Below, in pieces: positions 50,078-50,140 of a DNA stretch of 64,000 nt. This stretch comes from Lama guanicoe (Eukaryota): assembly GCA_013239625.1 (NCBI GenBank), contig MU054391.1:682001-746000 (forward strand). The letters are read 5' to 3'. A program made the position numbers and the translations under genes. Every line of letters begins with the position of its first letter. Positions within the stretch are counted from its first letter, which is position 1. The notes under the pieces were generated by a model. It saw only the letters and a program-made list of their open reading frames with translations. It was not told where the DNA came from and made no database searches.

Positions 50078-50140
50078 CTTCTATGTGAGGCGTAATTACC
50101 AGTCACATGACCACTCCCATCACACCTGGGTGTTGGACAT
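50078..50140 (-). CDS. MYT1L: Probable alternative (cassette) MYT1L exon, 63 nt: [20 protein letters not shown](S), the N-terminal part of an extra C2HC zinc finger
   Basis: Acceptor ttgtttttgtttggtggcag|A, donor AAG|gtgtgc; phase 2-2; same length as, and 18/20 residues identical to, the finger exon at 18952-19014. Confidence 0.85.

Follow-up and report, generated by a model that had tools for sequence, protein, structure and literature searches.

A probable camelid orthologue of an ancient alternative MYT1L exon that adds a seventh zinc finger

A 63-nt stretch on the minus strand of the MYT1L locus of Lama guanicoe is, with a probability that we put at about 0.8, the camelid orthologue of an ancient alternative exon which adds a seventh finger to the protein. 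It lies in a 64,000-nt segment of contig MU054391.1 (GenBank assembly GCA_013239625.1, positions 682,001 to 746,000), called here the window; all coordinates count from the first nucleotide of this segment. Judging from sequence comparisons, the exon is genuine: it would restore a finger homologous to finger 4 of MYT1, and it is old and under purifying selection. Some public gene models contain it and others lack it, which makes an alternative exon the best reading. As the former already list it, the feature itself is not new, and what is added here is one lineage-specific substitution.

RESULTS

The cassette exon and its neighbours

The cassette occupies positions 50140 to 50078 of the minus strand (63 nt, free of stop codons and flanked by AG and GT) and sits between an exon ending in KKDLIT and an exon starting with LSGCP. 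With its borders, it reads ...ttggtggcAG / ATGTCCAACACCCAGGTGTGATGGGAGTGGTCATGTGACTGGTAATTACGCCTCACATAGAAG / GTgtgcc. The reading frame is set by the upstream exon, whose 3′ end at 50493 (..GAC TTG ATA AC/gtaagc) supplies two bases of a Thr codon. In this frame the cassette is of phase 2-2 and encodes (T) + 20 residues + (S), both borders falling after the second base of a codon. The frame is kept by inclusion and also by skipping, because 63 = 21 x 3. A length that is a multiple of three, the lack of stop codons and the AG and GT at the borders are the structural features of an alternative exon. A first, sequence-only reading of this DNA had placed a 63-nt phase 2-2 exon between the DLIT and LSGCPLADK exons and had predicted that skipping would join DLIT to LSGCPLADK in frame; the minus-strand sequence bears out both statements, the former to the base.

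The upstream constitutive exon (PEDLDPFQ...KESKKDLI-T, 50493..50614, minus strand) matches Pfam PF08474, the MYT1 domain, with 49 bits at profile positions 211-242 of 242, that is, at the very end of the domain. It is identical to many MYT1L proteins at 40 of 40 residues and the context of its junction is also of MYT1L type, which together identify the gene as MYT1L. It is separated from the cassette by an intron of 352 nt, and a second intron of 458 nt leads to the downstream constitutive exon. The first 16 nt of the latter (49604..49619, minus strand, acceptor ...ctgtcttacAG) complete the Ser codon and encode L-S-G-C-P; the exon extends further.

Further upstream, near 61.6 kb and 52.5 kb of the window, there are more MYT1L-like exons. 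An open frame at 52191-52646, part of which is translated sequence outside the exon, shows 99.1% identity across 115 residues with a Camelus dromedarius MYT1L protein (P0076), and this protein reads through the same flank. The P0076 model looks faulty, as does that of Neotoma (P0073), both reading through a donor into intron sequence. A Cyprinus model (P0008) also looks faulty, with a finger-head exon joined straight to a later finger head. The window further contains two runs of N (36040-36185, 146 bases; 54667-54820, 154 bases). Translations rich in H-T/T-H are seen in several frames at about 43150-43420 and 2400-2660, and reflect CA/TG-type simple repeats in large introns.

Splice signals

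Splice sites were graded by counting matches to the consensus. The acceptor region of the cassette (ttggctgtttttgtttttgtttggtggcAG, 50141..50170, minus strand) has 14 pyrimidines among the 20 positions from -23 to -4, and the constitutive acceptors of the window have 12 to 15 of 20. For donors the consensus is MAG/GTRAGT. The donor of the cassette (GTGTGC, 50072..50077, minus strand, with AAG on the exon side) agrees with it at 7 of 9 positions. It cannot be called clearly weak, because the constitutive upstream donor, AAC/GTAAGC, reaches the same 7 of 9; the earlier description of AAG/gtgtgc as a weak donor is therefore unsupported. A motif scan of the two introns flanking the cassette found neither TGCATG nor CU-rich runs, and one GCATG on each side.

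The peptide is the head of a CCHHC finger

Profile and structure searches were run exon by exon. The 20 residues of the cassette supply two of the Cys and both His of a CCHHC (MYT1-type) zinc finger and, taken alone, match Pfam PF01530 (zf-C2HC) with 44 bits (E 2.3e-11, profile positions 2-21 of 29), the curated cut-off of this family being 32.3 bits. A constitutive finger head, at 19013 in the same window, gives a score close to this (46.7 bits). A search of the complete window in all six frames for the pattern C-x4-C-x4-H-x7-H gave four matches (50139, 19013, 9989 and 9830), always on the minus strand and following one another as expected of the C-terminal fingers of MYT1L. These four ordered matches, together with the PF01530 score of the cassette, exclude a match by chance.

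The genomic sequence also provides the complete pattern C-x4-C-x4-H-x7-H-x5-C. Four ligands are in the cassette, and the last Cys is found at the right distance in the L-S-G-C-P of the next exon. The same cassette-to-LSGCP join is present in 11 annotated orthologues, and the proposal that inclusion assembles a full finger with the LSGCP of the next exon thus fits both the ligand spacing and existing protein models. The next, constitutive finger is divided between exons likewise: its head exon (18954..19013, minus strand) ends with ASHR, and the exon that follows, near 11309, starts with LSGCP. The cassette is thus a further head exon, and its tail is the LSGCP that is left as an 'orphan' in the canonical protein.

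The best match among solved structures is PDB 2mf8_A ('Myelin transcription factor 1'), to each of whose two fingers the cassette is identical at 18 of 20 residues. At position 5 the fingers of 2mf8_A have Gly and the cassette Arg, and at position 12 they have Ile and the cassette Val. According to the accessible part of PMC5597252, 2mf8 corresponds to the fourth and fifth fingers of MYT1. Finger starts are 44 residues apart in 2mf8_A (residues 15 and 59), and the spacing is the same in an insert-bearing elephant protein (P0065; 21 residues from the cassette and 23 to the next finger).

Finger 4 of MYT1, the first of the F4F5 pair in 2mf8, thus resembles the cassette finger in several ways. 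It occupies the same position in the protein, immediately behind the K-K-[DE]-L-x-T junction found downstream of the MYT1 domain, has the LSGCP tail, and shares the 18 identical residues and the 44-residue spacing to the next finger. It differs in being present in all 14 MYT1 proteins, against 11 of 54 for MYT1L, and in having Gly and Ile where the window has Arg (position 5) and Val (position 12). The counterpart in ST18 is likewise a complete finger at the same junction, present in 57 of 57 proteins, and has in common with the MYT1L cassette the GHVTG version of the motif; it differs by its tail (VSGCP), by another linker and by the lack of any skipped form among the 57.

Included and skipped forms in database proteins

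Proteins were collected from a database clustered at 90% identity, by searches limited to sequences between 0.55 and 1.75 times as long as the query. The queries were a 194-residue open frame of the window, a 325-residue fish protein and a 558-residue carp protein. Of the 195 proteins fetched, two human entries were left out and 193 were examined, with lengths up to 976 residues. Canonical human MYT1L, with 1,186 residues in the accessible part of PMC5597252, lies above this reach. Junctions of MYT1L type were defined by the upstream context PK.K..CKE.KKDLIT.

Among the 54 MYT1L-type proteins that cover the junction, 11 have a 21-residue insert between DLIT and LSGCP and 43 skip it; owing to the 90% clustering and the reach of at most 976 residues, these counts express which partial or short models exist and not how often the exon is included. 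The insert is found in an elephant (P0065), birds (P0080, P0082), lizards (P0084, P0102), sharks (P0077, P0078) and teleosts (P0068, P0126, P0079, P0081). The skipped entries come from mammals (17), a bird (1), frogs (10) and teleosts (15), which gives an insert frequency of 1 in 18 entries for mammals and 0 in 10 for frogs. Both forms are thus present within birds, within teleosts and within mammals, and among the 54 proteins no single species was seen with both. The only camelid protein of the set, P0076 from Camelus dromedarius, is of the skipped form and passes directly from DLIT to LSGCP.

The 21 residues of the insert are identical in 10 of the 11 proteins, the exception being that of Anolis, with Glu at position 5. 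Compared to this common peptide, the window agrees at 20 of 21 residues and differs solely by the Arg at position 5. RefSeq gives several of the 11 the name 'isoform X4' or 'isoform X6'. The annotated isoforms, which include X4 and X6 of Cyprinus carpio, X6 of Chiloscyllium and of Stegostoma and a UniRef entry of Loxodonta, all have these 21 residues inserted at the DLIT/LSGCP junction, with Gly (Glu in Anolis) where the window has Arg. The exon had been called hidden, which is wrong given these 11 public models; the accompanying remark that it might already be annotated as a minor isoform was right as far as annotation goes (11 of 54 models).

A complete finger occupies the junction in every MYT1-type (14/14) and ST18-type (57/57) protein, as the sequence-only reading had stated for these paralogs. 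The finger is therefore ancestral, and skipping is peculiar to MYT1L. The 11 proteins with the insert and the 43 without it also support the view that the apparently lost finger is kept as an exon that can be included or skipped in frame, giving seven or six fingers.

In teleosts, the insert is found in 0 of 8 MYT1L copies with a tail degenerated to LSSCQ and in 4 of 11 with the tail LSGCP, a correlation drawn from few, related sequences. It is a hint, fitting the idea that the tail may be kept as part of the optional finger. The LSSCQ entries are P0025, P0111, P0117, P0118, P0123, P0124, P0127 and P0128, several of them named 'myt1l, a'. In effect, the LSSCQ copy would be a teleost duplicate from which the optional finger has been lost naturally.

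A Gly-to-Arg change at position 5 of the finger

Of the 851 fingers in the 193 proteins, 845 have Gly at position 5 (C-P-x-P-G-C). The cassette of the window, with Arg encoded by AGG, thus departs from the family at a near-invariant residue. The six exceptions (D 2, E 2, N 1, R 1) are mostly in cnidarian and mollusc proteins and include the Anolis cassette; the one natural Arg belongs to a Nematostella protein. Because Arg stands at a near-invariant Gly position, the finger may be weakened in this lineage, and the camelid substitution, which lies in the zinc knuckle, may modulate or inactivate the optional finger. In Anolis carolinensis (P0084), the cassette has Glu at the position where the window has Arg, and from these sequences the Gly appears to have been replaced in the optional finger on two independent occasions. 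Nothing but the Gly-to-Arg change is particular to this genome, and the base may also represent a polymorphism or an error.

Purifying selection and alternative readings

We compared the cassette to its sister exons. With the head exon at 19013 it shares 36 of 60 nucleotides; 19 of the 20 codons differ, 17 by synonymous and 2 by non-synonymous changes. With the other two finger heads of the window, it shares 39 and 33 of 60 nucleotides. Identities as low as 33 to 39 of 60 exclude a recent gene conversion. A protein sequence held while silent sites have heavily diverged points to old purifying selection and speaks against decay or gene conversion. The silent divergence and the identity of the insert in sharks, teleosts, birds and elephant, taken together, are strong evidence for long-term purifying selection. 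The two exons also differ in composition: by an eye count, third codon positions are G or C in 6 of 20 codons of the cassette (50080-50139), which mostly end in A or T, against 17 of 20 in the head exon (18954-19013), and the local G+C is 0.50 and 0.60, respectively.

This comparison bears directly on the possibility that, in this lineage, the cassette is a decaying pseudo-exon, a relic of a lost MYT1L finger that is no longer spliced in. The Arg in place of the Gly of 845 of the 851 fingers would be explained by such decay, as would the predominance of the skipped form among mammals (17 of 18 MYT1L-type entries, Camelus P0076 included). However, the open frame, the AG, the GT, both Cys and both His are all intact, and 20 of the 21 residues are those of the peptide common to sharks, teleosts, birds and elephant. 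Silent sites have diverged from those of the sister exon almost to saturation, with only two residue changes. A neutral relic would not be expected to stay so intact over the separation of sharks and mammals, and a residue other than Gly at position 5 does occur naturally (6 of 851 fingers, among them the Nematostella Arg and the Glu of the Anolis cassette). We consider the pseudo-exon reading improbable.

It is still less likely that the exon is constitutive in this species and that normal MYT1L is seven-fingered. Some species are represented in the protein set only by an insert-bearing model, such as P0082, which bears no isoform label, and the splice signals of the cassette are no worse than those of the neighbouring constitutive exons. 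Against this, the nearly identical Camelus dromedarius protein P0076 joins DLIT directly to LSGCP and 17 of the 18 mammal entries skip the exon.

A recent copy or gene-conversion product of the neighbouring finger exon, or a chance match, could be imagined because the peptide is identical to the next finger head at 18 of 20 residues, but this is refuted by the Pfam E-value of 2.3e-11, by the few nucleotides shared with each of the other finger heads of the window (36, 39 and 33 of 60) and by the insert that distant vertebrates have at the same junction, with Val at position 12, as in the window, and not the Ile of the next finger.

Known isoforms in the literature

The canonical six-finger state assumed by the sequence-only reading agrees with a 2022 review of MYT1L, whose available text describes one N-terminal, two central and three C-terminal fingers (PMC9307810). 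The terms 'isoform', 'splic' and 'exon' are absent from that available text (PMC9307810). No description of a seven-finger MYT1L or of the 63-nt exon was found in the full-text literature, which is weak evidence as subscription journals are thinly covered there. The MYT1L 'isoforms' of PMC10575775 are, from its accessible part, truncation products. An unnamed Myt1l cassette exon with inclusion of 0.75 versus 0.98 is reported for mouse islets in the part of PMC8395343 that is accessible.

DISCUSSION

The alternative-exon reading leads to a simple scheme. Each C-terminal finger would be split between a head exon, carrying Cys-x4-Cys-x4-His-x7-His, and a next exon in which LSGCP brings the last Cys, followed by the linker. 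Upon inclusion, the cassette head and the LSGCP tail would make a complete CCHHC finger, 44 residues before the next one. Upon skipping, the frame would be kept, the LSGCP tail would stand alone as an orphan and the canonical six-finger protein would be produced.

By this scheme the exon is presumably used in this species, its inclusion may be regulated, and the extra finger would be expected to alter DNA binding of the C-terminal array. Among 24 sequencing runs listed, none of which is labelled brain, four RNA-seq runs (X1-X4, 'reproductive system metagenome') contain 0.40-0.47 of the words sampled from a mostly intronic stretch of 3.35 kb. This share is above what exons alone could give, which suggests host DNA or unspliced RNA in the libraries.

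A broader proposal is that the exon acts across jawed vertebrates as a regulated switch between a three- and a four-finger C-terminal DNA-binding array, changing the arrangements of AAGTT sites that are read. We advance it tentatively and rate it slightly below even odds. A finger number that varies between transcripts has a precedent in MYT1, where the difference between six and seven fingers concerns the N-terminal finger. As far as the accessible part of PMC3139087 goes, the six- and seven-finger forms (Myt1a, Myt1b) arise from two alternative promoters, and not from an internal C-terminal cassette exon as proposed for MYT1L. For the three C-terminal fingers of MYT1L, the available text of the 2022 review gives recognition of an AAGTT core with an extra GTT 4 bp upstream (PMC9307810).

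MYT1L is a well-studied neuronal transcription factor, a major neurodevelopmental-disorder gene and a reprogramming factor. If such a switch exists, papers that describe it as six-fingered have missed an isoform. The identity of the insert from sharks to elephant implies that the seven-finger form matters to selection, in which case part of the gene would be omitted by constructs and by the interpretation of variants that rely solely on the six-finger form.
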